In this document: positions 619-40,703 of the stretch, piece after piece
Layout: each line of letters opens with the position of its first letter
How positions within the stretch are numbered: position 1 is the first letter of the stretch
Assembly (NCBI RefSeq): GCF_032191835.1
Contig: NC_083235.1
Location: 15,562,001 to 15,626,000 of the forward strand
Direction of reading: 5' to 3'
DNA: 64,000 nucleotides
DNA from: Heteronotia binoei
Lineage: Eukaryota
The notes under the pieces: generated by a model
What the model was told of the DNA's origin: nothing
Database searches by the model: none
What the model saw: the letters and a program-made list of their open reading frames with translations, nothing else
Position numbers and translations under genes: made by a program

Positions 619-851
619 GTTCTACCATCAAATGAGCCTACTGAGGTCTCCTTTCCTTTGTCCGAATGCTACTTAATGTGCTCTTTACAAAGGACAACCT
701 TTTAAAACTGTCTGATGACAAGACAAAATTTGCAACCACATTGGTGACTTTGTGGGTTCTTTGTGTTGATTAAGGAGACTGGAGAGAGTTACGGCAAAGG
801 AGTTCTTTAGCTCTAGGTGAGCTAAGGGTAACATCTGGAGATGCTATAGTG

Positions 852-3103: not shown

Positions 3104-4039
3104 ATGAATCACAAGAACATCACTCTTGTATCAGAATTCTTGCTCCGTGGCTTCTCATCCAACCCAGAGGTTGAAAAACTTCTCTTCCCATTTTTCCTCT
3201 CCATGTATCTCCTCACCCTCCTGGGGAACATAACGATAATCTTGTTGATCCGCTCTGATACGCAGCTCCGCCAGACCCCCATGTACTTCTTCCTCAGCCA
3301 CCTCGCAGTAGCTGATTTGGCTTTTGCCAGCACCGTCACCCCCAAGGTACTTGAGAATATAATCTCCCGAAAGAAGACCATCTCCTACTATGGCTGCTTG
3401 GCCCAGATGTTTGCAAACATACATATCGGCAATGCAGATAGCTACCTTTTGGCTTCCATGGCCTATGACCGCTACGTGGCCATCTGCTGCCCACTGAACT
3501 ATTCCACCATCATGAGCCACAAACGTTGCCTCCAATTGGCCACAACATCCTGGACGATCACCATGTTCCACGCCACACTTTATACCTTTTTGATGTCCCG
3601 CGTTGAATTCTGCGACCCTGGGGAAATCCCTCATTTTTACTGTGACCTTTATCCGATTCTGGATATCTCTTGCTCTGACAGCAAAGTCATAGATCTAGTC
3701 TTGCTGACTGAGGGGGTGGTGGAGATTTTGGGGCCCTTTGTTCTCATTATCATTTCCTATATGTTCATCTTCTACACCATCATAAGGATCCCATCGGCCA
3801 CTGGGAAGCGCAAGGCCTTCTCCACATGCGGATCCCACATTTGTGTGGTGGTCATGTACTTTGGTGGTATCAGCTTTGTTTATTTCAAACCAAATTCTAA
3901 TCTTGCAGAACGCCAAGATACCTGGGCCGCTATGGTATATACCATGGTCAACCCCATGGTCAACCCCTTCATCTACACCCTCAGGAACAGTGAGATGAAG
4001 GCAGCCCTGAAAAGAGTAATTAAGAAGCATTTTTGTTAA
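3104..4039 (+). CDS. Olfactory receptor, class II OR1-like, intact, 311 aa (called OR-A here)
   Basis: Has the OR motifs LQTPMYFFLSHL-like, MAYDRYVAIC, KAFSTCGSH, PMVNPFIYTLRN and an N-terminal NIT sequon. The ATG at 3104 follows the acceptor caccAG (3092-3093). The ORF-track start at 3050 lies in the intron. Confidence 0.95.
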   Translation: MNHKNITLVSEFLLRGFSSNPEVEKLLFPFFLSMYLLTLLGNITIILLIRSDTQLRQTPMYFFLSHLAVADLAFASTVTPKVLENIISRKKTISYYGCLAQMFANIHIGNADSYLLASMAYDRYVAICCPLNYSTIMSHKRCLQLATTSWTITMFHATLYTFLMSRVEFCDPGEIPHFYCDLYPILDISCSDSKVIDLVLLTEGVVEILGPFVLIIISYMFIFYTIIRIPSATGKRKAFSTCGSHICVVVMYFGGISFVYFKPNSNLAERQDTWAAMVYTMVNPMVNPFIYTLRNSEMKAALKRVIKKHFC

Positions 4040-6458: not shown

Positions 6459-8204
6459 CTTTATGAACAAACTTGAGACGGAAAAAATTTTCAATGAAAA
6501 TTGCAATCCTCTTTTGAAAGAGATATTTTTTTTACCAGATTTATAGATGATTGCTTCTTTGTGATAAGACACACAAAATATGCAGCAGAGCTCATGAAGT
6601 GGATGAGCACAATGCATGACAAGGTGGAATTTACTTACCAGGAAAGCACTAATGATGTACCTTTTTTAGATACAGTTGTGAACAAAACTACTGAGAATAA
6701 GTTGGCAACTAAAACCTACAGAAAGCCAACAGATAGGAATGCTTTTTTACAGTATTCATCATTCATCCATGTGCTTTGAAAAAGAATATACCATATGGCC
6801 AGTTTGTAAGGTTGAGAAGAAATAGTACCCTAATGTCTGCTTATCTTGAGGATAGTGATAAGTTGGCATCTCATTTTGTTGGTAGAGGCTATCCAGAAAA
6901 AGATGTTAGGATGGCTAGAAAAAGGGCTGCTAATCTAGATAGAACACAGTTACTAAAACAGAATCCCAGGATGAGAAATACTAGATTACAATGGGAACTA
7001 GAATTTAGCAGACTATCTAGCAGAATTTGTAATGTGGTAAGGAAGCATTGGCACATTGTAAGTGATACTGGAGGTTGTGAAATGCCACCACAAATAGAAT
7101 TGCGTCGCACTTATTCCATTAGGGATAAAATGGTAAGATCTAGAGAATACCATTCGGTCACTCATACTCTTAAAGGGCACTTTGCTTGTAAAAGGTGTAC
7201 AATTTGTCATTTATCTATGAATGTCAAAGAGTATTATTTTGCTGAAAAGACTAGACCATTTTGTTCTGAATCATTACTCTACATGTGCTACCCGCTGTGT
7301 TGTGTATTTGATCATCTGTGGGTGTGGCCTAAGGTATGTTGGCAGCACTACTCGAGCCCTTAGAGTACGTATTCTGGAACACAGGAGCAGACTTAGGAAC
7401 CATGTGATTGAAGCTCCTATGGTCAGCCATTTTATGCAAGAGAATCATGACTGTGAAGATTTTTTTTTTTTCACCTTATACAAATATGAACAAACAGATA
7501 GAAATGTTGACGTGCACAAGATCCTGCTGCAGAAAGAGGCATACTGGATACACCAGTTGAATTGCATTTCTCCATATGGACTGAATATGACCAACGATTT
7601 GACATGTTTTTTTATGAATGGTCTTCTTTATAATATTATGAGTGCTGTGCATAATTTGCCTGAATAATTATAGGATTTTATATTCTTTGTATGGAATATT
7701 TTCTATGTTGTATCTGCTGTGATATAGTTTGTGTCTTTTAGCATGTTGCATTAGAAATATGTTACTTTACCTTTAAGAGGTTTGTGTAATGGCAGCTGTA
7801 AATGAGATGTTTGCCTTTTTAAACATGTTAGTTGCACCATTAGGGTGCGCAAGAAGCCACATACTGAGCTGTAGCCGATGTGAAATTGCTGCTGGAGACG
7901 CTCTGCGTCCCTCTTTTTTGAAAATTGTGTAAAGAATCTATATAATTGAATCAATATGTAAGTATGATATATTTTTTCACTGGAAGAGGGTTGGTGGTGT
8001 CTGAATGTCCTTCTGATATTTTTGTATAATATTTTCTTTTGTTAGTGGTCCCAGGTCTGATGAAGACTGGAAAGAAACAAGTACTTAATCGATTGGCTTG
8101 TCACCACACTACTTTGGGACTTGAATGTACATGTTTTGGACATTTGGACTGGTTTCTATATACTTCTTAGTAAATTGGTCACTAGCTTGCATTTTTTGTT
8201 GTGT
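6459..8204 (+). mobile_element. 5'-truncated Penelope-like retroelement (Neptune-type): RT C-terminus plus GIY-YIG endonuclease, frameshifted
   Basis: Three ORF pieces: RFIDDCF..VPFLD..TYRKPTDRN (6501-6779); KKNIPYGQFVRLRRN with a CKRCTIC linker (6776-7363); and VVYLIICGCGLRYVGSTTRALRVRILEH, the GIY-YIG motif (7221-7667). Confidence 0.9.
8048..8120 (+). ncRNA. Candidate type I hammerhead ribozyme in the Penelope 3' region
   Basis: Core CTGATGA (8057-8063) and GAAA (8074-8077). Stem III caag/cttg with a TCGA loop, then GTC (8100-8102). Stem I ggt/acc and gtccca/tgggac. Stem II (agactggaaa) does not pair well. Confidence 0.65.
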
Positions 8205-11477: not shown

Positions 11478-11690
11478 TGGGACAGTGGCTCAGTGGTAGA
11501 GCATCTGCTTGGTAAGCAGAAGGTCCCTGGTTCAATCCCCAGCATCTCCAACTAAAAAGGGTCCAGGGAAATAGGGGTGAAAAACCTCAGCTTGAGACCG
11601 TGGAGAGCTGCTGCCAGTCTGAGTAGACAATACTGACTTTGATGGACCGAGGGTCTGATTCAGTATAAGGCAGCTCCATATGTTCATATA
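11478..11690 (+). mobile_element. tRNA-derived SINE with CR1-like tail (Squam2-like)
   Basis: The tRNA-like head gtggctcagtggtagagc...ggttcaatcccc runs straight into ...gatggaccgagggtctgattcagtataaggcagc. Reverse tail fragments lie near 62772 and 62990. Confidence 0.75.
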
Positions 11691-12029
11691 AATAGGTACA
11701 CACATGGCCTGGCCCAACCCATCATGGCTCAGCCCAGCAAGGTCTCATTTAAGTCAGATCCGGCCCTCATGAGTTTGACACCCCTGTGCTGGACCTTACG
11801 CAAGTCCATGATATCTGACCGGATTTACGTGATGGCTCTTTCCCTGCCAGGTCATGGGTCAACATGACTTGGGTAATGGTGGTGGCAGTTCTTCTCATTA
11901 TAAATGGCAGTGGTCTTGAGCATGGTCTTCTGGTAGGGAGGCTAAGGGTGGAGGCAACTCTGTCACACTCTGCATCCTCCCTCTGAGTGTGGTAGGTCCC
12001 TGGTGGGTCTCTTGGTCCCCTTCTCAGGA

Positions 12030-12368
12030 GGGCTTGCTGGAAACATTAGGCTAATTGGCAAAGCCCTTGAGTTGGTGTCTTCGAGATCGTCCCTAGAGAA
12101 TCTCTCAAGAGGGAATTCGGCTGCACCATCCTTCCTCCCTGAGTTGGGGATATCACAGCTCCCCAAAGTCCAAAGACTGAAGAAAAGCTGGCGGCACCAC
12201 TGCATCACTGCCTTCTGATGCTATACCAAAGGATGAGCCAGTTCTGCGCAACAGAAGAATATCCCTGCATCTTTCAGTTCAGCAACATCAAGGAAACATT
12301 GGCAGTTCCATCTCTTGCTTTGGCAAACTGGAAGGGCATTTGGGGCTGTCTTAATCAGCTGGGTAAGT
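12030..12368 (+). promoter_or_regulatory. Putative OR promoter plus 5' non-coding exon (module M2), probably for OR-B
   Basis: Contains aggcTAATTGgcaaagcc, tccctagagaatctctcaagagggaa and the donor G|GTAAGT (GT at 12363). Homologous to modules at 24.8, 50.6, 57.9 and 60.8 kb. Confidence 0.6.
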
Positions 12369-12647
12369 AGGAACACTTTGTGCACTGAAAGGTTTCTACC
12401 CTCAACAAGCCTACTAAGGTCTCCTTTCTCTGGGTGCCACCTAATGTGCTCTCTACAAAGAACAGCTACTTGGAACCTTCTGATGACTGGGAATAGTTGC
12501 AGCACATTTGGCAGGATTCTGCTGGCGACTGGATGTTTTGCAATGATTAAGGAGACAGGAGAGAGTTAAGGCTAAGGAGGTCTTTAGGTCTGTACGGGCT
12601 ATGGGTGATATCCAGAGATTTTTTCCTCCTCCAAAATTATAAACTCT

Positions 12648-12943
12648 GCCCCGTGGCGCAGAGTGGTAAAGCTGCAGTACTGCAGTCAGAGCTCTCTGCT
12701 CATGACCTGAGTTCAATCCCAGCAGAAGCTGGGTTCAGGTAGCCGGCTCCATGTTGACTCAGCCTTCCATCCTTCTGAGGTTGGTAAAATGAGTCCCCAG
12801 CAAGCTGGGAGAAAGCGTAGGTGACAGGGAAAGGTAATGGCAAACCACCTCGTAAAAAGTCTGCAGTGAAAACGTCGTGAAAGCAAGGTCACCACAGAGT
12901 CGATAATGACTGGTGCTTGCACAGGGGACTACCTTTACCTTTT
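12648..12943 (+). mobile_element. Sauria SINE, full length
   Basis: Reads gccccgtggcgcagagtggtaaagctgcag...cagccttccatccttctgaggttggtaaaatgag...tttaccttt. Confidence 0.9.
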
Positions 12944-14129
12944 ACAAACAGCTTACATAGAATAAGAAAAACTTTTTAAAAACATAAACTCAACTCACAA
13001 GTAATGGTACATGAATTAAGTCAAAGAAAAGAATTCAGCAAAACTGACTCTCAAAAAAGGTGACCACTTTTCTATTACAGATTGATGCTGAGACACCATA
13101 GCACGAGTTTAAATCAGAAGAGGGATGTATTGCATTTTTATTGGCTGATGCCATTCCAGATGTTAACCTTAAGGTGGCTACTTTCATCTTTTTAGCAACA
13201 AAAATAAGGAAGAAGATAACCACACCCAGCCATACAAGAATTTTGGCCAAGTCATAGTCTCATTCTGTCACGTTGTTTTATTATTTAGGTTTTAAATCTT
13301 GTTCATAGTTCTGTATTTTACTATGCTTTTTTAAAAGAAATGTTTTAATTTTTATGTCTAGAAGTAAACCGTATACTTTGGGGAGTTTGCTGGGTTGTTA
13401 TGGCCTATGGCTACAACAATAAAATACTTTACTTACTTACCACAGCACGTGACGTGATTGCACCTCATCAGTAATTTTATCCAGTATAAAGTACCCAAAT
13501 TTTGAGATATCAAACACATGTATTAGGAAATCACTCATCTTTCCAGTTACAAACTATAACTGCTTCAGCTGCAGTAAGTAAAGTCATTATAAACTCTCAA
13601 TCCAGTTTCGAGGCAGACCCAGATTCGACATCCAGGGATACTACACCGCTGAAGAATCCTAGTTGCCACAAAACGCACAGCCTCGTCCCAGAGGTCCCTG
13701 CATGCAGTCCAGGAGCTCTCTTCCCAGTTCCTAACAGACTGCCTTTTAAATACAAACATACCCAAAGTGAGCAGACACCAACGTGCCCTGACCCTCTTTG
13801 CTACTTCCCAGCTTCTGGTGTCTCAAGAAAGTCTTTTAAACCCTTTGAAATCATGTCCCCAAAGTCCTCTGTTCCTGTTAACAAGTTCTAACACAAGTCC
13901 AAGTCCCTAAGGGACATTTCTCTGCTCGTCCTTGGTCTTTCCTGGCTTGACAGGGTGGCCAGCCCCAGCGACTCCGCACTGTAATGCCATTCCAGATGTT
14001 AATCCGCACTGTAATCCCCATTCAACTGGCTCACCTTTCTGCACGTGAGTGCAACTTCTCTGTTGTCCATCTCAGCTGGCCTAAGTGCCACCATTGCCTC
14101 GTATTTCTCTGTTGCTTCACTGTCTAGTG

Positions 14130-14400
14130 CAGTTTGGTGTAGTGGTTAAGTGTGTGGACCCTTATCTGGGAGATCCGGGTTTGATTCCTCCACTTGCACC
14201 TGCTGGAATGGCCTTGGGTCAGCCATAGCTCTGGCAGAGGTTGTCCTTCAAAGGGCAGCTGCTGGGACAGCCTTCTTAGCCCCACCCACCTCACAGGGTG
14301 TCTGTTGTGGGGGGAGAAGACAAAGGAGATTGTAAGCCGCTCTGAGTCGCTGATTCAGGGAGAAAGGCGGGGTATAAATCTGCAGTCTTCTTCTTCTTCT
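14130..14400 (+). mobile_element. MIR-like SINE (Squam3-like)
   Basis: Typical head and (TTC)n tail. Confidence 0.85.
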
Positions 14401-14660
14401 TTTTTTCCCCTCTGGCACAATTTCTTCTTCAGCCTCCTCCTTGTTTGCCTATTCTGATGCTTCCCCACCTTCCTTGCCTCCTCTTGCAGTCTTCAGCGTC
14501 CCAGCCTTTGCTGATGATTTTCCAGCTGCCTCTCCCCCACTCCCCAGTGTGAGTCCTTTCAGTCTTATTTAAAGTTCCTGATTGCCTGTTTGTTTCATAA
14601 ATTACTCTGCACTGGAACTGTTGGTCACAGAGCCAAGCAGTGGGGTAGTGATCTCGGACT

Positions 14661-15017
14661 CAGTGCCGGATTAAATCCTGTGGAGGCCCCTAGGCAGTCA
14701 AAATCTTAGGGGCCCCCTTGCAAATTATCTCTGAGTCTGAGTGCCTGCCACACCACCCATGGGCCTTGCTGCAGCCTGCAGGCACCTTCTTAAAAGCTCC
14801 TTTTACTAAGCTGCAAGGGAGAGGCAGAGAGAGGCAAACTTGGCAAGGATGCCAGCAGCAGCCGCACCAGGGATGTCGGGCAAAGAGCAGCTCAGTTGCT
14901 GGCTGTGCGTGAAGGCTGGGAGGGCTGCAAGCAGGGGGGAAACCTGGCCCGGGGCCCCTAAAGGTGTGGGGGCCTATAGGCCAATGCCTACTTGGCCTAA
15001 TTGTTAATCCGGCTCTG
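14661..15017 (+). mobile_element. Non-autonomous hAT element
   Basis: TIRs cagtgccggattaa / ttaatccggctctg and TSD ctcggact/cttggact. Inverted family member at 48907-49270. Confidence 0.85.
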
Positions 15018-15229
15018 CTTGGACTTGGTTCTGAGTGGGTCTCAAGACCTAGTGAAAGATGTAGAGGTTGTTACACTAGTTGGGAACAGTGACCACAATG
15101 CTATTAAGTTCAGCATTCAGATCAAAGGAAAGCTATTCCTTAAGTACAAAACTGTAGCCTTCGATTTCAAAAGTGAGAACTTTACAAAAACGAGGGGAAT
15201 AGTAAAAGGAAGCTGAAGGGCAAAAGATA

Positions 15230-15500
15230 AGAGGAAGAAGAGGAGGATGGATTTACACTCACCCTTCACTCAAAGTCTCAGAGCAGCTTACAATCTCCCT
15301 CCTTTCCTCTCCTCACAACAGATACCCTGTGAGGCAGGCGGGGCTGAGAGAGCTCTGAAAGAACTGCTCTCAAGAGAACAGCTGTGGGAGAACTGGACTA
15401 ATCCAAGGTCACCCAGCAGGTTGCATGTGGAGTAGGAGTGGGGAATCAAACCCGGTTCTCCAGATTAGAGTCTGCCGCTCTTAACCACTACGCCAAACTG
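15230..15500 (-). mobile_element. MIR-like SINE (Squam3-like)
   Basis: Reverse copy ending ttaaccactacgccaaactg. Confidence 0.8.
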
Positions 15501-15842
15501 AGGGAAAAATCAGCATGGCTTCCACAAAGGGAAGCCCTGCCTCACCAACCTTTTGAAGTTCTTTGAGAAAGCAAACAAGCATGTAGGTAACAGTGACCTC
15601 ATAGACACTATATACCTGGACTTTCCAAAGGCTTTTGACAAGGTACCTCGCCAATGACTCTTGAATAAACTTAGCAGTCATGGGATAAGAGGACAGGTTC
15701 TCTTAATGGATTTCAAACTGGTTAAAGGACAAGAAGCAAAGAGTAGGATCAATGGGAAGTTCTCACAGTGCAGCAGTGGGGTCCATAAGGATCAGTACTA
15801 GGGCAGGTACTATTTAATTCATTCATAAATGCTCTGGAACTA

Positions 15843-16687
15843 ATAGGTTTTGCAATTCCAATGTTACCAGAGAATTACTTAATGGGTAAGTGGTTAGATT
15901 TAGACATTAGTAAGAGAACTAAAAAACTGATATCTATCTTAGTATCTACTGCTAGACTAACTATTGCTTTAAAATGGATTGACAAATCTCTACCTACTAT
16001 AGACATTTGGCAAACAAAATTAAGGGAACACTTTATTTTGAGCAAAATTTCTTACCAAACCTCAAATGCTCTGTTAGAACATTATGAATCAAAATTTGTA
16101 GCAATTTGGTTTCCGGAAACAAGTTATATGACTGAAAATAATATCTTAAGAGAGAACCCATTGTATAAAACTATGAGCGTTTTCGCACTGACCTTACTTG
16201 GCAGCGACGTCCCTCTTCACTGCGCAGCGTCTGCGCGGATTTCGCACACGTTGCTCCGCAGAACCCGGAAGAGCCGCAAAGTCCCGCGGCTTTTGCATCG
16301 CAAATGTAAACTGTTTTTTGGCCACTTTACATTTGCGACGCAAAAGCCGCGGGACTTTGCGGCTCTTCCGGGTTCTGTGGAGCAATGTGTGCGAAATCCG
16401 CGCAGACGCTGCGCTGTGAAGAGGGACGTCGCTGCCGAGTAAGGTCAGTGCGAAAACGCCCTATGATTTATTTTTAAAAAGAAAAAAAAAACAAGAAAAT
16501 GACTATTTGTAACTTCTGTGCTTTACAACTGAATATTACTACATAGTAATATTACTACTATATTACCTGTGCTTGAAATATAGTTATAATGAAGTTATGT
16601 ATAATAGGTAATTGTAATCATTTGTTTTTTGTAATTTGCAACTGAACTTTAAATTGCAATAAAAATATTACATTTTGAAAAAAAAAA
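15843..16687 (+). mobile_element. 5'-truncated L1 (ORF2 C-terminus, 3' UTR, poly-A)
   Basis: Translates to ISILVSTARLTIALKW...IW. Followed by aataaa and an A-run to ~16687. Flanked by an imperfect duplication aaatgctctggaacta / aagtgatttggaacta. Confidence 0.75.
16175..16461. mobile_element. PIF/Harbinger-like palindromic MITE
   Basis: 287-bp foldback with TIR G(A/G)GCGTTTTCGCAC and a 3-bp TSD TAT (16172-16174, 16462-16464). Confidence 0.8.
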
Positions 16688-17330
16688 GTGATTTGGAACT
16701 AAGGGAGAGTAGTGTCGTGGCCAAGTTTGCAGATGACACAGAATGATTCAGGATAATGAAACCCAAGACTGACTGTGAAGTGACAGTACACATAACATAC
16801 AATACGGTATGCACTTATTAACACTGACTGGAACAAATAAACCAATGAAATCAGACCAGACTGCAAAGTGTACTACTAAGAGTTTACTGTTTTATATGTA
16901 ATGTCTACTGCACAGTGTCTGATCTCTATCACCTAAAGGCCCATTTAGTTTTAATCAACATTGAAAGTGCACCGTATTATAAATGATATATTTTGCTTAA
17001 TCTTTTTAATGTATGCTTTTCACTTCAACTTTTTAGGTACTCTATTCCATTTTGGGGTGGGGTTTTTGCCCTTTCTTTGGCGTTGCTGTGCCTCACAATG
17101 GAGACCCAGAAATTACCCAACAAGTGCTCATCAGAAGATAAATGCAAAATCGCTAATTCTGCACAAAAATGAAGATATATTCTCTAGCTTGGGCATGCAA
17201 TACATGACATTCAGAATCCCCAAGTTCCGTCACACTATTAGTGTCTAGGTTTCCTTGGTTACCCATAGTAATTAGATTTGAACTTGGTTTAAGTCTTCAG
17301 TATAGGCATCAGATACCCAGTTGCTGGATA

Positions 17331-17660
17331 AGAACATAAGAGAAGACATGTTGAATCAGGCCAATGGCCCATCCAGTCCAACACTCTGTCACAAAGTGGC
17401 CAAAACCCCCAGGTCCCATCAGGAGGTCCACCAGTGGGGCCAGACACTAGAAGCCCTCCCATTGCTGCCCCCCCCAAGCACAAGAATACAGAGCATCACT
17501 GCTCCAGACAGAGTTCCAACAATGCACTGTGGCTAATAGCCACTGATGGACCTCTGCTCCATATGTTTATCCAATCCCCTCTTTAAGCTGTTAATGCTTG
17601 TAGCCGCCACCACCTCCCGTGGCAGTGAATTCCATGTGTTAATCACCTTTTGGGTGATTA
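17331..17660 (-). mobile_element. CR1 LINE 3' end
   Basis: Reads aagaacataagagaag...ggccaatggcccatccagtccaacac. Confidence 0.85.
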
Positions 17661-18064
17661 AGAGAAGATGGATGGAAAATTATATGTGATGTACAAATGC
17701 TGTAATAAATCCCAAAGGCTGTTTCTTTAAACAAAACCAAATAGAGGGGCAGTGTTATGATAGACAAACATGAATTCAGAATGCCGGGTCAGAGCATGGT
17801 GGAGGATTTGGAACAAAAAGCAGGGGGGGGGGGGCGGGGAGTGAACAGATAAGTGGTTAAGTCTGCCGTGATAACTCATAGCATCTCTGCTCAAAACTGC
17901 ATCTTTTCAAACGGATGTGTTTGCTTGGCAGCTCAGTCTCTACTATGCAAATTGGTATCTAGATGACAGAGGAGGGTTGTGTGCCTAGAAATCTGTCAGC
18001 CCAAACTTTGGTTGTAGGCCTCTACTTTTCTTCTTATTCTCACCCTTACAGCTGCGTCGGACCA

Positions 18065-19021
18065 ATGAATCACAAGAACACAACTCCGGTCTCCGAATTC
18101 TTCCTCCGTGGATTCTCCTCTCAACCAGAGGTTGAAAAACTCCTCTTCCCACTTTTCCTCTTGATGTATTTGCTCACCCTCCTGGGGAATGTCACCATCA
18201 TCTTGCTGATCCGCTGTGACAGGCACCTTCTCCAAACCCCCATGTACTTCTTCCTCAGTCACCTTGCAGTAGCTGATTTGGGGTTTGCCAGTACCATTGT
18301 CCCCAAAACGCTACAGAACTTGTTATCTCAGAGAAAGACCATCTCCTACCATGGCTGTCTGGCCCAGATGTTCTTCTACATACATATCGGCAATGCAGAT
18401 AGCTATCTTCTGGCTTCCATGGCCTACGACCGCTACGTGGCTATCTGCAACCCACTGAACTATTCCATTATCATGAATCACAAATGTTGCCTCCAGCTGA
18501 CATCTATATCCTGGACTCTCACTATGTTTCACTCATTGATTTATACCTTTTTGATGTCCCATGTTGAGTTCTGTGATCCTGGGGAAATCCCCCACTTTTT
18601 TTGTGACCTTTATCCTCTTCTGGATGTCTCTTGCTCTGACTCTTACCTGATAGATCTAGTCTTGATGACTGAGGGGATAGTGGAGATCCTGGGGCCGTTT
18701 GTGCTCATTATCATTTCCTATGCATTCATCTTCTTCTCCATCTTGAAGATTCCATCTGCCACTGGGAAGCGCAAGGCTTTCTCCACATGTGGGTCCCACA
18801 TCTGTGTGGTGCTCATGTACTTTGGTGGTATCAGCTTTGTTTATTTCAAACCGAATTCTAATTTGGCAGAACGCCACGACACCTGGGCTGCTATGATGTA
18901 CACCATGGTCAACCCCATGGTGAATCCCTTCATCTACAGCCTCAGGAACACTGAGATGAAGGCAGCCATGAAAAGAGTCATTAGGAAGCATTTTTCATTA
19001 ATTTCCAAAGGGCTGAAGTAG
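18065..19021 (+). CDS. Olfactory receptor, class II OR1-like, intact, 318 aa (OR-B)
   Basis: All OR motifs present, NTT sequon, acceptor ttacAG at 18050-18051. The C-terminus is 7 aa longer than in OR-A, -C and -D. Confidence 0.95.
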   Translation: MNHKNTTPVSEFFLRGFSSQPEVEKLLFPLFLLMYLLTLLGNVTIILLIRCDRHLLQTPMYFFLSHLAVADLGFASTIVPKTLQNLLSQRKTISYHGCLAQMFFYIHIGNADSYLLASMAYDRYVAICNPLNYSIIMNHKCCLQLTSISWTLTMFHSLIYTFLMSHVEFCDPGEIPHFFCDLYPLLDVSCSDSYLIDLVLMTEGIVEILGPFVLIIISYAFIFFSILKIPSATGKRKAFSTCGSHICVVLMYFGGISFVYFKPNSNLAERHDTWAAMMYTMVNPMVNPFIYSLRNTEMKAAMKRVIRKHFSLISKGLK

Positions 19022-19092
19022 TGTTTTCTGGGAGATACCTTGTTGGGTATCCCATTTTTTCTGGGAGATATGTCATTGGATATCCCATGAGG

Positions 19093-19276
19093 CAGGGGTT
19101 TTTTTTTGGTATTAGGAAGTCCTTTGCATTTTAGGTCACACCCCCTGATGTAGCCAATCTTCCAAGAGCTTACAGTAGGCCCTGTAAGAAGAGCCCAGTA
19201 AGCTCTTGGAGGACTGCCTACATCAGGGGTGTGTGGCCTAATATGCAAAGGAGTTCCTGCTACAAAAAAAGCCCTG
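19093..19276. mobile_element. Palindromic CAGGG-family MITE
   Basis: Foldback sharing its core with 447-618. TSD not preserved. Confidence 0.8.
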
Positions 19277-24390: not shown

Positions 24391-24804
24391 TTATTTGGAC
24401 CTGAGCCCAATTTGGGAAAGGGCAGAATATAAATCCACAGAAATAAATAAATAAATACAGTTTTATTTTATTCTGGGTAAAGAAGTCTGAAAGACAATGC
24501 CCTACAGGTGGACAAGATCATGCAGGAACTGTAATTAAATTATCTTCTGGAAGTACTAATCTGGGATCACTAAACTTTATTCCAAGGTTATGTACCTAAC
24601 TGGACTTGTTGTTTTGAAAAACTGAAATTTAATAGTTCTTCCCAACCGCAAACATGGAATCAAAATGCTAAGCCTGGACTTCCAAAAGGAAATGAGGATG
24701 GGTAAAAGCTCTATACCCCTCCACCTTCTGTCTCTGTTTGGGGCAAATTCATATAGATCCTGTGCAGCAACCCCATGGACAATATTTATTTTCCAAGGAG
24801 GACA

Positions 24805-25193
24805 AGCTGTAAACAGAGGCTCATTTGTTAAGCCCTCGTGGTGATGTCTCAGAACTGTCGTCTAGAGAATCACTAGAGAGGGAACCCAGCGGAGCTGTCC
24901 TCCAACCTGGGAATCACAGCTCCAAAGACCTGAAGACATGAACAAAAACTGGCGGTGCTGCTGATGGTGCCGTCTCTGGATACAGCAAAGTGCACGCCAG
25001 ATCTACTAAGAAGGAGGAAGAAGACTGTGTTTCCAAGAAGGAACATGCAAATGGTCTTTCCTGCCTCCTGAATTCTCTGTCCGAGATATCCTATATCCTT
25101 CAGACTGACAACATCAGCAGCAGATGCATAAATTCTGCTTCTGCTGCAAACCAAAAGATTTTTCCGCCCACTGCTTTCATCCACCAGGTAAGT
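24805..25193 (+). promoter_or_regulatory. Putative OR promoter plus 5' non-coding exon (module M3), probably for OR-C
   Basis: Contains ctgtaaacagaggctcatttg...gtctcagaac...ctagagaatc and the donor cag|GTAAGT (GT at 25188). Confidence 0.55.
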
Positions 25194-25239
25194 CAGTGTT
25201 GGTGTGAGTGACTCAGCATGCCTGGTCATGGGGGGCGGG

Positions 25240-25548
25240 TTGTGCTACATCACTCTAAGTGTATATAGGTGTTATCTCCTTGAATGGGATGCCTCTCTTG
25301 GTCTTAAGCTGGGAGCTGCTGTCTGACCCCTCCTCTCTGTTCCTTTGTCCTCTGCCTCCCTGCACATGGCCTTCCATGGAGACACACGTCTCTGTAGCTC
25401 TCTCCTGTGGAGGCAGTGCCCTCATACTCCCACATGCATGATGCCTTTTGCTGGCCATTTCTGATAGGGAAAGTATTCTTTAGATTAGGCTTCTCTCTCT
25501 TCTTCTGATTTCAACCTGAATGTGAACTGGATCTATTTGAATAAATGT
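25240..25548 (+). mobile_element. LTR-like repeat, homologous to 1286-1660
   Basis: TATA-like gtatatag and AATAAA; colinear with the reverse copy at 1.3-1.65 kb. Confidence 0.5.
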
Positions 25549-25954
25549 AAGAGAGATTCCCCACTTGGCTTGTTCCCGTCTTGTTGCTCCTTTTCCCGTG
25601 GGACTGCTGCTGGATTTCGCACAAACTGCCCCAGTCCGGCGAGTTGCCCTGCCTCTCTTATGTCCAGACCTTTATTGGCATAAAAGCAATCATGATTTGC
25701 AATCAAGAGTAGGTACAAAGACCTGAAGTATAGTAAGAACAACGCATAAAGCAATCAATTCAATGGCAGCCAATAATACTAATCAAAAGCAGACACCCAG
25801 CAATTAAAATACAGAAGTATGCCTAGATTTAATTTTCTAGGCTTCTGCTAAGAAATCCACAACACATGTAGTAATGTGGGGATTAACATTTTCTAAAAAA
25901 GCAGGTTAGAGTTTTCCTTTTAGCTCTTCAAGTTCCCTCTGCAGTAGGCAGGAT

Positions 25955-26053
25955 CCTCTGAAAAACGGTATCTCTAAGGAGATGAGACACTTGTTGGCAC
26001 ACTTCATCACAGCAGCTAGGATCCTTCTGGCGCAGAGATGGAAATGGCAGGAG

Positions 26054-26100
<47 letters not shown>

Positions 26101-27063
26101 TTATTTATATCCCGCCCTCCCCGCCGAAGCAGGCTCAGGGCGGCTAACAACATTAGATCAATACATTAAGTTATACAATAATGTTTAAAAACAATAACTG
26201 ATTTAACAATTTAATTAAAATTCTAAAATTAATAAAATTAACATCCTGGTGCTATTCCAACAGATGGTAAAATTACTTAAGCAGTCTCTCTCTTTTAATC
26301 GGTGAAGGCCATCTCGAAAAGGATGGTCTTGCAAGCCCTGTGAAATTGTTCAAAGTTCCACAGGGCCCGCATTTCTTCCGGGAGCTGGTTCCATAGGTGT
26401 GGAGCCACAACAGAGAAGGCCCGCGTGCGGGTACTCTGTAGTTTTACCTCTTTCGGCCTGGGAATGGTCAGCAGGTTCTTCCCTGTTGACCTCAGTGCTC
26501 TCTGGGGTTCATATGGGGAAAGACAGTCCCTCAGGTAGGCAGGTCCTCGGCCATATAAGGCTTTAAAGGTGATAACCAGCACTTTGTAACGAATCCGGTA
26601 AAATGGACTTGATGGGAAAAGTTCTAGAGACAGCAGAGCTGGACTTTCTATCCCAGCTGATGGCTGGGAAATCTAAAGAAGAAGCAAGAAAATATTGGAT
26701 GAAATTGAATGCTTGGTTGGATACTCAAGACTTCTAAGATTCTCTGGTGTGAACTGATTTCTTTTTGCTTTTTTCCCTGTATTTTATATTATAAAATTCA
26801 CCTTTACTAGAATTGTCAAAATTATTAGATAATAACAAAAGACTTATACTATAAAATGTTATAATGGATTATATGCAGCTTAGACAAAATGATATGGGAC
26901 AATTTCTGCAAAGAAAATACTGTAGAATCATACTTGTATTTTTTGAAAGTATTTTATGCAAAAAAAGTTCAGAATGTATTGTGCTTTTACCTTTCTTTTT
27001 CCTTTATCCCTATCCCCCATTTTTTTTCTGAAACTAATAAAACTTTTAAAAACTGAAAAAAAA
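25955..27063 (+). mobile_element. 5'-truncated L1 3' end, interrupted by an L2
   Basis: Translates to HFITAARILLAQRWK | MGKVLETAELDFL..W..WLDTQDF*. Followed by aataaa and an A-run at ~27055-27063. Confidence 0.7.
26056..26602 (-). mobile_element. L2-clade LINE 3' fragment with (TTGA)n tail
   Basis: Translates to VITFKALYGRGPAYLRDCLSPYEPQRALRS. (TCAA)n repeat at 26056-26098. Confidence 0.85.
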
Positions 27064-27522
27064 ACCCTAGTATCTGTCTGCTGCAGAGGGAACTTGAAAA
27101 GAGGTGGGCAACTCGCTGGCCTGTGGCAGTTTGTGCAAAGCCCAGCAGCAGCCCTGTGGGAAAAGGAGCAAGGAGACCAGAACAAGGTGAGTGGGGAATC
27201 TATCTAAGTTTAATCCCCCCTGCAATCTACTTCTAGGGAGATACTGTGCTCAGTATCATGCTTCTATGACTGGGCAAACTCTGCTTTATTAGCCAAACAT
27301 CCCAATAGTAACAGCGCTTCCAGCACTGGCACACTTCTAGAAAACTTCCAAAGCCTCCTCCAGTTCTTATACATTCTCTGCAATAAAATAAAATAAAATA
27401 AAATCCATATATTGGGAATCTAGTAATGCAAGAAAAAAATTGCAACCACATTCCCTATCTTGAGTATACAAATATACATCCAGAATCCTAAGGCACCCCT
27501 TGGGCATGACTATGGGAATGAA

Positions 27523-27723
27523 CAGGGCTTTTTTGGTCGAAAAAGCTCAGCAGGAACTCATTTGCATATTAGGTGACACCCCCCTGATGTCACCATTGTT
27601 TCACATAGGGCTTTTTTGTCCCTACCAAAAAAGCAGGAATTCCTTTACATATTAGGCCACACCCCCTGACACCAAGCCGGCCGGAACAGTGTTCCTGTGC
27701 GTTCCTGCTCAAAAAAAGCCCTG
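27523..27723. mobile_element. CAGGG-family MITE
   Basis: Perfect TSD GGAATGAA. Confidence 0.85.
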
Positions 27724-28244
27724 GGAATGAAGGAGAAAACAGGCAGTCGAGAAAGTGTTAAATTCTCTGTGTCGGAATCTGACTTGCTAGTCAAAAATGC
27801 ATGATTTCAAATGAATGGGCCTCCTGAGCACATTAGTGGCCTTAGTACTGGACTGAGGACTTTTCAGTTTAGAAGAATCAACCAGGGGGTAGCATGGTAG
27901 AGGTTTATAAAGTTATACATAGGATGGAGTGAGTTGACAAAGAGACATTTTTTCTCCCTCTACCGAAATACTAGAATTCGAGGGCATCCAACGTGGCTGA
28001 CGGGCATTACATTCGATTGGATAAAATGAAATACTATTTTTGCACTTTTACACGTGGAGGACTTCTGCATGCAACCTCAGTCCCAACCAGAGAGGGAAGA
28101 GCGCAGGTGGAAGCAGAGGAGGGCACCGAATCATGTATTACTGTTACACTATTGAAAGGCTGGATCTGTGGTCCCTACGCTGTGAAGTTCCTCTTATGGA
28201 AACTGACCATGTGATGCAGGGATGGAGGAATCAGTCAGGTATTG

Positions 28245-28670
28245 CTGTTGTTCAGTAGCACAGTTGAATCTGACTCTTTGAGACCCCATGCCAGGCCCTC
28301 CTGTCTTCCACCATCCTCCACAGCCCTCTCAAATTCATGTTTGTTACATCAGTAACGCTGTCCAGCCATCGCATCCTTTGCCGCCCCCTTCTTCTTTTGC
28401 CTTCTGTCCTTCTCAGCATCAGGATCTTCTCCAGTGAGTGCTCTCTTCTCATTGGATGGCCAAAGTATTTGAGTTTCAGCTTCAGCATCTGACCTTCCAG
28501 GGAACAGTCTGGGTCGATTTCCCTTAGGACTGACTGATTGGATCTTCTTGCAGTCCAAGGGGCTCTCAAGATTCTTCTTCAGCACCACAGCTTGAAAGCA
28601 TCTATTCTTCTGTGCTCGGCCTTCCTTATGGTCCAACTCTCACAGCAATACATTACTACTGGGTATAGTG
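28245..28670 (-). mobile_element. RTE-BovB LINE 3' fragment
   Basis: Translates to PWTARRSNQSVLREI..CSLEGQMLKLKLKYFGH..RGRQRMRWLDSV, with a (CAA)n tail. Confidence 0.9.
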
Positions 28671-28869
28671 TCAGGTCAGGTATAGTGAAGAGAAAATGGA
28701 GGAACAGAGTGAACCTGTGCATCAGGGGAAGGTCTGCTGGCCCCCAAGCCCTATGTTTGACACTCCTTTGTTTTCTTGTTATTGGGTGCATGGTGACTTA
28801 CATAGATCAGGCTTTCCACAGTTAAGTGTAATGCAATGCACAATGATACAAAGCATTTGAACTTTAAAT

Positions 28870-29745
28870 ATATGTTGGTGGAGTCTGAAGCTGAGAGGAA
28901 AAGAGATCTTGGGGTCATGGTGAACAGCTCATTCAAAATGTCAACCATTGTGGAAAAAGGCAAACTCCATGATGGGAATTATCAGGAAAATAATAGCAGA
29001 TAAAATAGCCAAATATCACAGAGGCCTGGGGCAGATCTATTCTGTGGCCTCATTTGAACTACTGTGTACAGTTCTGGTCGAAGAGGATACTGCAGAACTG
29101 GAAAAAGTGAAGAAGGGGTAACCAAGATGATTAGCAGGTTGGTACACCTTTCAGAGGATGGTGGAAGACAGGAGGGTCTGGCCTGAGTTGATCCATGGGG
29201 TTGCAAAGAGTCAGACTCAACTGTGCGACTGAACAACAACACACCTTTCTTAGCAGGAAGGGCTAAAATGTCTGGGACTTTTCAGTGTAGAAAAAAGAAG
29301 ACTAAGGGGGAATGTGATAGAGGTTTCTAAAATTATGCAAGGGGTGGGAAAAGTAGGTACTTTTTCTCTTCCTCCCAAAATACTAGAGCACAAGGACAAA
29401 CAATGTCTTTTATGAGCTACAGTAGATAAATTCAGGCTGGACAAAAGGAAATACTTGAATTGTTGAAATATTTGAATGGTTGAATTCACTACCAGTTGAA
29501 GTAGTGATGGCCGCAAGCATAGGCAGCTGTAAGCAGGAATTGGATAGATACATGGAGAATAGATCCCTCAGTAGATCCTAGAACTTCCATGTACTACAGC
29601 AGTGAACCTCTGAATAACACTGCTAGGAAGCAATATGTTTGATTGGTCCTCCAGGTCAACTGGTTGGCCATCATGTGAAACAAGATGCTGAACTAGATGG
29701 ACCACTAGTCCGATCCAGCAGGCCACTTCTTATGTTCTTATGTTA
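28870..29745 (+). mobile_element. CR1 LINE 3' part abutting the OR-C acceptor, with a BovB tail inserted at ~29158-29243
   Basis: Contains gagatcttggggtcatggtgaacagctc and ends ccgatccagcaggccacttcttatgttcttatgtt. The BovB tail is gttgcaaagagtcagactcaactgtgcgactgaacaacaac. Confidence 0.8.
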
Positions 29746-29773
29746 TTCTGTTCCCTACAGTAACATCTGCCTA

Positions 29774-30709
29774 ATGAATCAAAAGAACGTAACTCAGATC
29801 TCTGAATTCTTGCTTCATGGTTTCTCATCCCAGCCAGAAGTTCAAAGGGTTCTCTTCCTGCTCTTCCTCTCCATGTATGTACTCAACCTCTTGGGGAATA
29901 TAACCATCATTTTGCTGATCCGCTGTGATATGAAACTCCTACAAACACCCATGTACTTCTTCTTGAGCTATCTTGCAGCAGCTGATATGGGTTTTGCCAC
30001 CACCATCATCCCGAAGACACTGGAGAACTTACCGTCTCACAAAAAGTCCATCTCATACTGTGGTTGCCTGACACAAATGTTTTTCTACATATATTTTGGC
30101 AATGCAGATAGCTACCTGCTGGCTTCCATGGCCTATGATCGCTATGTGGCAATCTGTCAGCCAATGCACTATTCTACCATGATGAGCCACAAACGTTGCC
30201 TCCAACTAGCCACAGTGTCCTGGACTATCCCCATGATCCATTCTTTGCTTTATACCATTTTGATGGTCCGCGTTGAGTTCTGCAACCCCGGGGAGATCCG
30301 TCATTTTATCTGTGACATTTATCCTGTTCTGGAGGTGTCTTGCTCGGACAACAAAGTCATAGATTTTGTCTTGATGACGGAGGGACTAGTAGAGATCCTG
30401 GGGCCATTTGTGCTCATTCTCATTTCCTACGCGTTCATCTTCTACTCCATCATGAGGATTCCGTCTACAATCGGAAAGCGCAAGGCCTTCTCCACGTGTG
30501 GGTCCCACATTTCTGTGGTGGTCTTGTTCTATGGCGGTGTGAGCTGGGTCTATTTCAATCCAAGTGCCAAGAACCCAGGCCTCCAGGACACGGTTGCAAC
30601 TGTGATGTATACCATGGTGATCCCCATGCTGAATCCCTTCATCTACACCCTCAGGAACAATGAGATGAAGTTGGCCATGAGGAGAGTCATTAGGCAGCAT
30701 TTCTATTAA
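29774..30709 (+). CDS. Olfactory receptor, class II OR1-like, intact, 311 aa (OR-C)
   Basis: All OR motifs present, including FYG in TM6 and PMLNPFIYTLRN. NVT sequon; acceptor ctacAG at 29759-29760. Confidence 0.95.
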   Translation: MNQKNVTQISEFLLHGFSSQPEVQRVLFLLFLSMYVLNLLGNITIILLIRCDMKLLQTPMYFFLSYLAAADMGFATTIIPKTLENLPSHKKSISYCGCLTQMFFYIYFGNADSYLLASMAYDRYVAICQPMHYSTMMSHKRCLQLATVSWTIPMIHSLLYTILMVRVEFCNPGEIRHFICDIYPVLEVSCSDNKVIDFVLMTEGLVEILGPFVLILISYAFIFYSIMRIPSTIGKRKAFSTCGSHISVVVLFYGGVSWVYFNPSAKNPGLQDTVATVMYTMVIPMLNPFIYTLRNNEMKLAMRRVIRQHFY

Positions 30710-37072: not shown

Positions 37073-37328
37073 GAGCACCCGGTGCAGAGTGGTAAAGCTG
37101 CAGTACTGCAGTCTGAGCTCTCTGCTCGCGACCTGAGTTCAATCCTGGCAGAAGCTCGGTTCAGGTAGCCAGCTCAAGGTTGCCTCAGCCTTCCATCCTT
37201 CTAAGGTTGGTAAAATGAGTACCCAGCTTGCTGAGGGGAAAGTGTAGATGACTGGGGAAGGCAATGGCAAACCACCCCGTAAAAAAGTCTGTTGTGAAAA
37301 CGTTGTGATGTGATGTGACCCCCGAATC
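37073..37328 (+). mobile_element. Sauria SINE, 3' incomplete
   Basis: Reads gcagagtggtaaagctgcagtactgcag...cagccttccatccttctaaggttggtaaaatgagtacccagc. Confidence 0.85.
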
Positions 37329-37561: not shown

Positions 37562-40500
37562 TTAGTCTTTTCCCCTCAGCCAAGGGCACAGAGTCCTGAT
37601 CTTCCACTGAATGTCCTTCCTTGCTTCTCCTGAGATCCACTCTAAATAAGGGTTCCATCTGGTCTCGATTTCCTTGACTTTATCTTCCCACGTGGAATCC
37701 TTGTTGATTGTTGCCACGATGTCAGACTGTATGTAATCAAACAAATAGCTGTGCCAGCTTTCTATTGACCATTTACTTTTATCTTTCCACCCCAAAGCGA
37801 TGACCGCCTTCCCCGCTAGTATCATTGCCTTGACAAGGTTTTGCATGGGTCTACTTAGTGCCGGACTTCCTATTGTGCTTAACAACATCATATTAAAGCC
37901 AATGGTTAATGGTACATTGCAGACTTTTCTAATAAATTGAATAATTTCCCCCCAAAAGGGTTTAACCTCTTCACACTCCCACCACATATGTGCAAACCAA
38001 CCCTTAAATTGTTTGCAATGCCAGCACTTGGAGCTCACTCCTGGGAATATATTGGCTATTTGTGCGGGAGTTTTGTACCATTTTGTGAAAAATTTATATT
38101 CCAGTTCTTTAAATTTGGTTACTTTAATCCTTTCTAGACCATCCAAGATTTTCCCAGCCAACCCCTCTGTTAACTGACCTTCATGACTCCAAATCTTTTG
38201 TAAATGTACTATTATTTTATCTTTATTTGAAATCATTTTTCTGTATAATAACCCCACTAGACCCTTCCTTTGTTTGGCCATTACCTTATATATCTCTTCC
38301 ATTGGAGTGTCTAACCAAAGCTCTCCCTTTTCACTGATCATCTTAACTCTCTTATGCAAGCCTGCTATGTTTAACCAGTATTGATTACCTAAATCTTCTA
38401 TAATTTCCTGTAAGGGTTTTAGCTTACCACCCCTAAACATATCGTCCACTCTAAAATAGCCTTTGTTTTTAAGCCTTTCCCACCATTTTATAGCATGCAC
38501 CTCCTTAACAATAACTTCTAGGGGGCTCCACCTTGAAACCTTCCCTAGCCACTGTGGGTACCATTTCATCCCGGTTTCTAATGCTGTTCTTCTGGGCCCT
38601 ATAGCTAATTTTAGATCTTTTGTCGACACTGTGGAAAAAAATCCAAATCTTCCAATGCCACTGTTGACCGCATTCTCGAAATTAATCCACTTCTGTACCT
38701 TATCCTCACTCAAATCTAGTAACGCTCTTAGTTGGAAGGCCTCATAATATTTACTTAAATTTGGGATTCCCCAACCTAATTCTGATTTTAGGTTGTATAG
38801 AATTCTCTTATGAAACCTACTGTTTTTATTATTAAAAATCCACACTTTGATTGCTTTATTCCATTGTTCAATTTGATTTTTCCTCAAACCTAAGGGTAAC
38901 GTTTGGAATAAATACATTAACTTTGGTATCATGAACATTTTAAGAGATCTTATTCTAGATGATATCCCTAGTATTTTATGATTCCAATTATTCATATCCC
39001 TCTCTATTTTCTTCCATATTTTACCATAGTTCTCCTTTATCATTTTGTCCATATTTTTTTGGAGGACTATCCCTAAATATTTTAATCTCTTGGCTCCCAT
39101 TCCTATATTCGTAATCCTATTTATTTCCTGTTTTTCCTCTCTATTAACATTAAGGTATAGAATTTCTGATTTTGCCATATTCACTCCGAGCCCTGAACAC
39201 TTTTCAAAATCATCTAAAATTATCTTAATCTCTTTAACTCCGTCTTTTGGGTTAGACATAATTACTATGATATCATCCGCAAATAAATTAATTTTCATTT
39301 CTTCAATACCTGACTTATACCCCTCTATTCTCCCGGCATTCCTAATTCGCTCTGCTAGTTGCTCTATAGCTATTATAAATATAAGCGGGGATAGTGGACA
39401 GCCTTGTCTTACCCCCCCTTGAATTGGGAACACTTGTGAGTGGTCAGTGTTGACTCTAACTTTGGCCTTACCTCCGTTGTATATTTCCTGTATAGCGTGT
39501 AAGAACCGTTCCTCTAAACCTATCTTCTTTAATATTTGCCACAAGAATTCATGTGAGAGAGTATCAAAGGCTTTATAAACATCCAACTTTAACAGAGCTA
39601 TTTTTTTCTTTTGGCCATGGTGCAATACATTTAAGATATTTCTAATAGGATGGGCAATAGATCTACCCTCAATAAAACCGTATTGGTCCCCTTTTATGAT
39701 TGACGGGATAACTCTCTTAAGTCTATTTGCTAAAACCTTAGCAAAAATCTTATAATCTTGATTTAGTAAACTAATGGGCCTATATGAACCTACTTCTTCC
39801 GGATCTTTCTGGGGCTTTAATATCAAAATTATTTCTGTTTCCTTCCATGAGTCCGGGGCTTTCTTTCCTTCCAAGACTTCATTAAAAACTACCTGCAATT
39901 CAGGTGCTATAATTTCTACCATTTCTTTATAAAAGTCAGAAGTAAAGCCATCCAGCCCTGGTGATTTACCCTTTTTGAGCGCTTTTATTACTTCCTTTAT
40001 CTCTTGGAGTGTAATCTCAGCACCCAGTGAGGCTTTTGCTTCCTCCTCTATAATTAGCTTAGGTGCGTCCCACACCTCCGTTATATTCTTTTTCATATAT
40101 AAATTTTTATAGAAGTCTTCAAATGCCTTAGTGATTTCCTTAGAGTTTTGAGTTGTACTATTATTAATTTTAATAGTTCTAATTGATTGTTTTGCCTTTT
40201 TAACTTTCAAATAATTAGCTAATCTTTTTGCTGTATTAATGCTATTCCTCTGGAAGTCGTTCTTAACCATTATTTCCTTTTTCCACATTGTTGCCATATC
40301 TAGGGCCTCCAACTGTTTTTGAATCTCTTTAATTCTAATCTGTAAACTAGGATTACACTTTCCCACTATTTCTTTTTGTAACTCCTCCAATTCCTTAAGT
40401 TTTGTTTGCCTTTTTTTATACCATTCACTTTTTATGTCTTTTTCCTTCCTAACCAAATGGCCCCTTATTACCGCTTTAGCAGCATCCCACAATATATTAG

Positions 40501-40699
40501 TTGAGACAGTTCCTCTATTTTCCTTAAAATATAATTTTAACTGTGTCATTAAGTATTCCCTATCCTCTTCTTTTGTCATTACCAAGTTGTTATACCTCCA
40601 AGGTCTTTTTTTCGAGGGAAGATTTAATTCTAATTCAATACTTAGAGGGGCATGGTCAGAAATCAAAATTGGATGGGTCTTGATCTCTTTAACCACCAT
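37562..40699 (-). CDS. L1 ORF2 remainder: EN end, RT and Cys-rich C-terminus (1045 aa open frame)
   Basis: Motifs SDHAP, KSPGLDG, YRPISLLNQDYKI, LDVYKAFD, GVRQGCPLSP, LFADD, KYLGI and CWHC...HMWWEC. Confidence 0.9.
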   Translation of the reverse strand: MVVKEIKTHPILISDHAPLSIELELNLPSKKRPWRYNNLVMTKEEDREYLMTQLKLYFKENRGTVSTNILWDAAKAVIRGHLVRKEKDIKSEWYKKRQTKLKELEELQKEIVGKCNPSLQIRIKEIQKQLEALDMATMWKKEIMVKNDFQRNSINTAKRLANYLKVKKAKQSIRTIKINNSTTQNSKEITKAFEDFYKNLYMKKNITEVWDAPKLIIEEEAKASLGAEITLQEIKEVIKALKKGKSPGLDGFTSDFYKEMVEIIAPELQVVFNEVLEGKKAPDSWKETEIILILKPQKDPEEVGSYRPISLLNQDYKIFAKVLANRLKRVIPSIIKGDQYGFIEGRSIAHPIRNILNVLHHGQKKKIALLKLDVYKAFDTLSHEFLWQILKKIGLEERFLHAIQEIYNGGKAKVRVNTDHSQVFPIQGGVRQGCPLSPLIFIIAIEQLAERIRNAGRIEGYKSGIEEMKINLFADDIIVIMSNPKDGVKEIKIILDDFEKCSGLGVNMAKSEILYLNVNREEKQEINRITNIGMGAKRLKYLGIVLQKNMDKMIKENYGKIWKKIERDMNNWNHKILGISSRIRSLKMFMIPKLMYLFQTLPLGLRKNQIEQWNKAIKVWIFNNKNSRFHKRILYNLKSELGWGIPNLSKYYEAFQLRALLDLSEDKVQKWINFENAVNSGIGRFGFFSTVSTKDLKLAIGPRRTALETGMKWYPQWLGKVSRWSPLEVIVKEVHAIKWWERLKNKGYFRVDDMFRGGKLKPLQEIIEDLGNQYWLNIAGLHKRVKMISEKGELWLDTPMEEIYKVMAKQRKGLVGLLYRKMISNKDKIIVHLQKIWSHEGQLTEGLAGKILDGLERIKVTKFKELEYKFFTKWYKTPAQIANIFPGVSSKCWHCKQFKGWFAHMWWECEEVKPFWGEIIQFIRKVCNVPLTIGFNMMLLSTIGSPALSRPMQNLVKAMILAGKAVIALGWKDKSKWSIESWHSYLFDYIQSDIVATINKDSTWEDKVKEIETRWNPYLEWISGEARKDIQWKIRTLCPWLRGKD

Positions 40700-40703
40700 A
40701 TTA

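Follow-up and report, generated by a model that had tools for sequence, protein, structure and literature searches.

A conserved upstream block, probably a promoter with a non-coding first exon, accompanies OR genes in a gecko cluster and in other squamates

Olfactory receptor (OR) genes in a cluster of the gecko Heteronotia binoei, and related OR genes in six other squamates, are preceded by a homologous block, one per OR and in the sense orientation. In agreement with the gene-linked module proposed in a preliminary description of this DNA, the block ends in a consensus splice donor to which a matching acceptor corresponds just before the coding exon, it is non-coding and excludes interspersed repeats, and it has been inherited together with the coding sequence. 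Sequence comparison suggests that it is most likely the promoter and non-coding exon 1 of each OR, a reading that we consider probable. We infer that the donor and acceptor are used, that the transcription start site (TSS) lies inside the block, and that a homeodomain-like site is bound by an Lhx2-type factor.

Results

The window is the whole stretch of 64,000 nucleotides analysed from H. binoei (Bynoe's gecko), assembly GCA_032191835.1, CM063337.1: 15,562,001-15,626,000, and positions are counted from its first letter. Five intact OR coding exons were identified in it, each matching Pfam 7tm_4 (PF13853) with E values of 1e-51 to 1e-54. The sources name the OR subfamily in this cluster OR1-like. 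Gene calls for these ORs give CDS ranges only and, as had been noted, omit the module described below.

3104-4039, plus strand: OR-A CDS, Pfam 7tm_4
18052-19021, plus strand: OR-B exon 2, with 13 nt of 5′ UTR and an intronless CDS (ATG at 18065), 7tm_4 at 2e-54
18065-19021, plus strand: OR-B CDS, Pfam 7tm_4
29774-30709, plus strand: OR-C CDS, Pfam 7tm_4
47773-46838, minus strand: OR-D CDS, Pfam 7tm_4
55929-54988, minus strand: OR-E CDS, Pfam 7tm_4

The window also carries a full-length L1-like element on the minus strand (37562-42395), which has an intact 1045-aa ORF2 (RVT_1, 37562-40699) and an ORF1 broken by the window's N run (the window holds 131 N in total).

Five homologous blocks, M2 to M6, had been described upstream of the OR genes, and both their homology and their places were borne out by MAFFT alignment. 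A profile built from the five gave exactly five full matches in the window (E 1e-114 to 1e-138) and one partial match at 621-709. Homology begins about 60-80 bp upstream of the block starts given in the preliminary description, and the resulting islands, together with a sixth found outside the window, are as follows.

11981-12619, plus strand: M2 island, upstream of OR-B, with a promoter-like 5′ part, a putative non-coding exon 1 and ~250 nt of conserved intron start
12050-12058, plus strand: homeodomain-like site GCTAATTGG of M2, a candidate Lhx2-type site
12363-12368, plus strand: M2 5′ splice site GTAAGT, exon end at 12362, at the same aligned position in 18/18 copies
12363-18051, plus strand: predicted OR-B intron 1, with GT...AG bounds, transposon-rich
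24732-25315, plus strand: M3 island, upstream of OR-C, donor G at 25188, predicted intron 25188-29760
50493-51036, minus strand: M4 island, upstream of OR-D, donor G at 50604, predicted intron 50604-47787
57641-58198, minus strand: M5 island, upstream of OR-E, donor G at 57890, predicted intron 57890-55937
60720-61239, plus strand: M6 island, pointing at an OR just past the window end, donor G at 61120
L002:6384-6895, sense to OR-A: M1 block of OR-A, just before window position 1 (about 140-510 bp)

All five window blocks end in GG/GTAAGT or AG/GTAAGT, in keeping with the shared GGTAAGT end first reported. The motifs said to be common to the blocks held up as homologous sequence but not letter for letter: M2 has CTGGAAAC rather than CT(A/G)TAAAC and GTCTT rather than GTCTC, and M6 has CTATAAGC. 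TCCC(T/A)AGAG sites, described for several copies, are exact within the window in M2 only (TCCCTAGAGA) and are not kept across copies. The four predicted intron ends at 18051, 29760, 47787 and 55937 each coincide with a pyrimidine tract and AG before the ATG, that of OR-B being a pyrimidine tract with a CAG ending at 18051. Distances from donor to ATG are 5702 nt for OR-B, 4586 nt for OR-C, 2831 nt for OR-D and 1961 nt for OR-E, and the interspersed repeats in OR-B intron 1 include 12648-12942, 14660-15017 and 17328-17652.

M2 is matched at 11981-12489 by a 16-copy profile and, in BLAST, by Eublepharis over 12024-12612 (76%) and Sphaerodactylus over 12024-12587 (71%). M5 is 73% identical to M2 over 580 nt, of which 240 nt belong to the intron. 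The orthologous block of M3 was found in Gekko (L003:13344-13936) and that of M4 in Paroedura (L005:13480-14039).

M6, at the window edge, is the only block without a visible OR. The part of the window that carries M6 and its intron (58413-63742) is a ~5-kb segmental duplicate of L011:3704-9218, 90-94% identical and ~57 kb apart; that duplicate runs into an OR at L011:10001, and the window's homology to it ends at 63742. A block for every OR implies one for OR-A as well, and M1 was indeed found in DNA fetched upstream of the window; its donor (L002:6754) precedes window position 1 by 143 nt and the OR-A ATG by 3247 nt. The stretch of post-donor intron that had been placed at ~385-800 near OR-A does exist, but at 619-842, and 443-623 is an interspersed repeat. 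Repeat insertions part M1 from this intron-start element.

The wider distribution of the block was followed in a sample of ~217 kb from seven squamates (five geckos, one cordylid and one lacertid). Besides the window, the sample comprised another stretch of this H. binoei cluster and loci around related ORs of Gekko japonicus, Eublepharis macularius, Paroedura picta, Sphaerodactylus townsendi, Hemicordylus capensis (Cordylidae) and Lacerta agilis. It holds 18 OR coding exons by tblastn and 18 blocks by profile search. Every block lies on the strand of its OR, in sense, 0.9-7.7 kb upstream of an OR coding exon, and all 17 ORs having enough upstream sequence possess one. No orphan or antisense copy was found by profile search in the ~217 kb at E<0.01. 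The preliminary description had set against its own reading the case of a dispersed repeat unrelated to OR position or orientation; within the ~217-kb sample, 18/18 copies are sense and upstream.

Phylogenies of the block and of the CDS contain the same clades and the same orthologue pairs (M2 with Gekko 1, M5 with Paroedura 1, M3 with Gekko 2 and M4 with Paroedura 2), indicating that the block has been duplicated and passed on as a unit with its coding exon. Several copies per window and SINE/LINE-rich surroundings would suit a dispersed repeat or transposon fragment that came to lie near ORs by chance. Such an element is nevertheless extremely improbable, given that copy number equals OR number with every copy sense and upstream, that no copy occurs elsewhere in the 217 kb, that the block phylogeny mirrors the CDS phylogeny, and that there is neither an Rfam match nor a terminal repeat. 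The presence of the gene-linked module in geckos, the cordylid and the lacertid indicates that it predates the split between Gekkota and Unidentata, which took place on the order of 200 million years ago. The cordylid and the lacertid belong to Unidentata, the sister group of Gekkota (NCBI taxonomy).

One Paroedura picta copy has the 5′ part of the block tandemly duplicated (L005:7241-7472 and 7524-8055). The same copy carries an insertion of ~75 nt just before the donor, the only one of that size inside the block among the 18 copies.

The splice signals are kept at both ends of the predicted intron. A donor GTAAG(T/C) stands at one aligned position in all 18 copies from seven species; Gekko copy 2 seems at first to have lost it (GA), with GTAAGT 4 nt downstream. 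An acceptor, consisting of a pyrimidine tract and AG, lies 2-13 nt before the ATG in 16 of the 18 ORs, again in seven species, the exceptions being Sphaerodactylus copy 2 (AG changed to AA) and Lacerta copy 2 (shifted CAG). At the Sphaerodactylus townsendi locus where the usual acceptor is lost (L006:18120-18215), the deposited gene model (16014-19146) starts 2.2 kb upstream, and its ATG is unrelated to the block, so that the model may reflect a genuine alternative exon or else a work-around in the annotation. A neighbouring H. binoei OR (L011:19333-19345) has ATA at the usual start codon and would start at an in-frame ATG 9 nt upstream, within exon 2 just past the acceptor. Two short Logan contigs encoding related ORs (P0022 and P0038) retain the pyrimidine tract and acceptor and are therefore genomic or unspliced.

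The predicted block exon is non-coding. In each copy, the 330 nt that precede the donor hold stops in all frames, and gap lengths in the block alignment show no preference for multiples of three (46 vs 86). When the reading frame was walked back over the predicted junction by index arithmetic, a stop preceded any in-frame ATG of the block exon in 15 of 16 scorable ORs (Sphaerodactylus copy 1 is the exception). A coding exon or an upstream ORF in the block is ruled out by the stops, the gap lengths and the frame check. Nor is the block a recognisable structured RNA element: no Rfam family matches any block, and RNAalifold predicted 0 consensus pairs on block alignment A2. An Rfam tRNA match (44 bits) on the plus strand at 11479-11550 lies outside the block, ~480 bp upstream of M2, and is probably the head of a tRNA-derived SINE, not a tRNA gene.

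The module had been described as kept amid heavy transposon turnover, and the repeat content of the window agrees with this. Interspersed repeats make up 30% of the window and 20-60% of neighbouring bins, whereas none falls within -400 to 0 before the donor in the five window modules. The block is kept in every gene; the upstream flank and the intron beyond ~+400 nt have wholly turned over.

Rates of substitution were compared with edge-proportional partitions in IQ-TREE. Relative rates were 0.45 for codon positions 1+2 and 1.28 for codon position 3; 1.16, 1.27 and 1.32 for successive thirds of the block; 2.07 for the upstream flank; and 2.02 for post-donor columns. The flanks thus evolve ~1.6 times faster than the block, which evolves at about the rate of third codon positions. 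Fitch steps per column were 2.5-2.7 in the block, 2.53 at third positions, 3.7-3.8 in the flanks and 1.1 in the 10 columns around the donor. When column scores were shuffled, none of the 10-nt windows in the block came out as significantly slow (the best gave P=0.12-0.17). Between Heteronotia and Gekko (~80%) and between Heteronotia and Eublepharis (~72-76%), alignable intron pieces are as similar as the block, so that sequence-level constraint is modest and comparisons among geckos are uninformative as a test of it.

These rates raise the possibility that the block is a functionless relic, the slowest-decaying part of uninterrupted co-duplicated DNA, in which GTAAGT is incidental. A block rate equal to that of third codon positions, a gecko-gecko identity equal to that of alignable intron pieces and the lack of a significantly slow window would all follow. 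They have to be set against the persistence of the block in 17/17 ORs on both sides of the Gekkota-Unidentata split, despite complete turnover of the upstream flank and of the intron past +400, the 0 repeat insertions in five window copies against a 30% background, and a 5′ splice-site hexamer present in 18/18 copies and paired with a conserved acceptor. A neutral origin of this pattern appears highly unlikely. Evidence for selection, as judged from these comparisons, is mainly the retention of the block, the absence of repeats and the kept splice signals, not sequence rate.

Conservation is not confined to a predicted exon. It is even from about -420 to +300 around the donor, forming an island of ~700 bp. 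Among the A/B/D/E lineages, their gecko orthologues and the cordylid, the intron start (~300 nt) can be aligned over most of its length at 60-80%, like the block; for A/B/D/E homology extends ~250-300 bp past the donor. The stretch from +400 to +700 gave no alignment, homology being gone beyond +400 nt. The limits of the exon are therefore unreadable from conservation, which continues equally into the intron. For M2, the 3′ limit of the island is marked by a ~290-bp interspersed repeat (12648-12942) that starts ~30 bp past the conserved sequence and has copies at 37081-37308, 54192-54485 and 56034-56301, 82-88% identical.

Within the intron start, an element 100-300 nt past the donor is shared by several copies.

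619-842, plus strand: OR-A intron-start element, aligned with 12394-12619 at 70.5%, with a 16-copy profile match at 619-720
12469-12619 (plus strand), 57787-57641 (minus strand), 50548-50411 (minus strand) and 619-842: intronic element, 100-300 nt past the donor

This element is common to the cordylid Hemicordylus at ~70% identity and absent from M3, M6 and the Lacerta copies. When gecko was compared with cordylid by BLAST, nothing matched apart from this intronic piece (M2 12469-12579) and a small portion of the block. The aligned copies lack a conserved GT donor after the element, and we therefore do not take it for a second exon; it may instead serve as an enhancer or as a downstream promoter element. 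At the other end of the island, AG/GAG after T-rich sequence occurs in many copies at the 5′ edge of the block and is weakly conserved, which leaves room for a further upstream exon.

A functional, gene-linked block might thus have another architecture. It could be an internal non-coding exon, the real promoter and exon 1 lying further upstream; the TSS could lie near the donor, so that nearly the whole block would be promoter; or a second promoter or an enhancer could reside in the conserved first ~300 nt of the intron. The even spread of conservation (about -420 to +300) is compatible with such arrangements, as are the dominance of the +100 to +300 element, with a short bit of block, in gecko-cordylid BLAST and the T-rich sequence with AG/GAG at the 5′ edge of many copies. 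Mouse ORs, moreover, often have several 5′ exons and alternative TSSs (PMC3247239). On the other hand, deep comparisons contain no conserved element further upstream, the AG columns at the 5′ edge are not slow, the intronic element has no conserved GT donor after it, and an internal non-coding exon would not be expected to come with as much as 400 nt of repeat-free sequence. Counted jointly, the three arrangements are unlikely, and a promoter followed by a non-coding exon 1 remains the preferred reading.

The homeodomain-like sequence GCTAATT(G/T)G, always at one aligned position 280-390 nt before the donor, is present in 12 of 18 copies, among them those of the cordylid and the lacertid; four others, namely M3, M4 and the second copies of Gekko and Paroedura, are one base off. 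The site is among the three slowest 10-nt windows of the block and is not statistically distinct (column shuffling, P about 0.17). The O/E (Ebf) sites that had been proposed to accompany it did not stand up: TCCCNNGGGA, one mismatch allowed, was counted five times in the ~10 kb of block sequence where ~3.8 would be expected, in line with chance, by string matching with no position weight matrix. RGRGGGAACC, a half-site-like string, is more conserved than TCCCTAGAGA, again by string comparison only. CT(A/G)TAAAC is gecko-specific and TATA-like in only some copies. A reading of it as a TATA box with an initiator was rejected, its distance from the conserved GTCTCAGA being ~42 nt and not the canonical ~30, and for the same reason no TSS is called.

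Discussion

Taken together, these data suggest that each OR gene of the OR1-like subfamily consists of two exons, with a repeat-free conserved island of ~700 bp placed 1-8 kb upstream of the coding exon. The core promoter would be the 5′ part of the island, around the homeodomain-like GCTAATT(G/T)G. It would be followed by a non-coding first exon of roughly 100-300 nt that ends in the consensus GG/GTAAGT donor, and the remainder of the island would be the first ~300 nt of the intron. Exon 1 would be spliced across the transposon-filled intron to the acceptor 2-13 nt before the ATG. The module would have been copied with the CDS at every tandem duplication and retained since before geckos split from other lizards.

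A more speculative proposal, which we hold to be distinctly unlikely, is that the island is a subfamily-specific cis-regulatory unit predating the gecko/other-lizard split, or that it works by way of the OR transcript, in its non-coding portion. In a mouse study, OR RNA was reportedly found to contribute to receptor choice in a non-coding capacity. If the proposal were true, the cis-regulatory island would carry information beyond generic Lhx2/Ebf sites, for example on choice probability or zone.

The predicted organisation has several consequences. It would mean that a mammalian-style OR gene layout predates, in this OR subfamily, the split of geckos from other lizards. The block profile may serve to locate the likely first exon and promoter of the whole OR subfamily in squamate genomes, and the exact junctions predicted here can be tested with any olfactory RNA-seq. 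The 18 aligned natural variants would be usable for reporter or ATAC work in laboratory geckos (Eublepharis and Paroedura).

Prediction of OR TSSs and 5′ exons is difficult, and nearly all mapping has been done in mouse (PMC3247239). Mouse ORs have their TSS on average 4.2 kb from the ATG, with fewer repeats and higher conservation around it and with introns in the 5′ UTR, and O/E and homeodomain sites belong to the promoters of mouse and human class II ORs (Young et al. 2011, PMC3247239). The lizard genes resemble mouse and human class II ORs (PMC3247239) in their intronless CDS with an acceptor just before the ATG, in a predicted upstream non-coding exon (1-8 kb away in gecko against a mean of 4.2 kb in mouse), in the drop of repeats at the module, in the co-duplication of promoters with recent paralogues, and perhaps in a candidate TAATT homeodomain-type site. 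They differ from mouse and human ORs (PMC3247239) in that the lizard module, described here from sequence alone, is recognisable across the whole subfamily and across infraorders and is not enriched in O/E sites.

The module also invites comparison with Greek Island enhancers, which carry a composite Lhx2/Ebf motif (Monahan et al. 2017, PMC5608512). Both lie within an OR cluster, and the homeodomain-type site of the Greek Islands has a candidate counterpart in the gecko block. Greek Islands are, however, sparse and intergenic (PMC5608512), whereas the gecko block occurs once per gene and is tied to a splice donor. The gecko site also differs from theirs (PMC5608512) in having no juxtaposed canonical Ebf site: the nearest O/E-like sequence, CCCTTGAG, lies ~10 nt downstream with 3/8 mismatches, as judged by string and not by the published matrix.

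A closer parallel in layout is offered by the mouse V1R subfamilies, in which promoter regions of ~1 kb are conserved within a locally duplicated chemoreceptor subfamily (Stewart and Lane 2007, PMC1955453). As in the gecko cluster, peaks of homology stand out of repeat-rich gene blocks (PMC1955453). V1Rs belong to another receptor family in another organism, and their TSSs, unlike those of the gecko module, were mapped by 5′ RACE, to sites inside the promoter regions (PMC1955453). Judged by analogy with these systems, the module is a reptile/squamate instance of the upstream exon/promoter layout known from mammalian ORs and V1Rs, and not a new kind of element.
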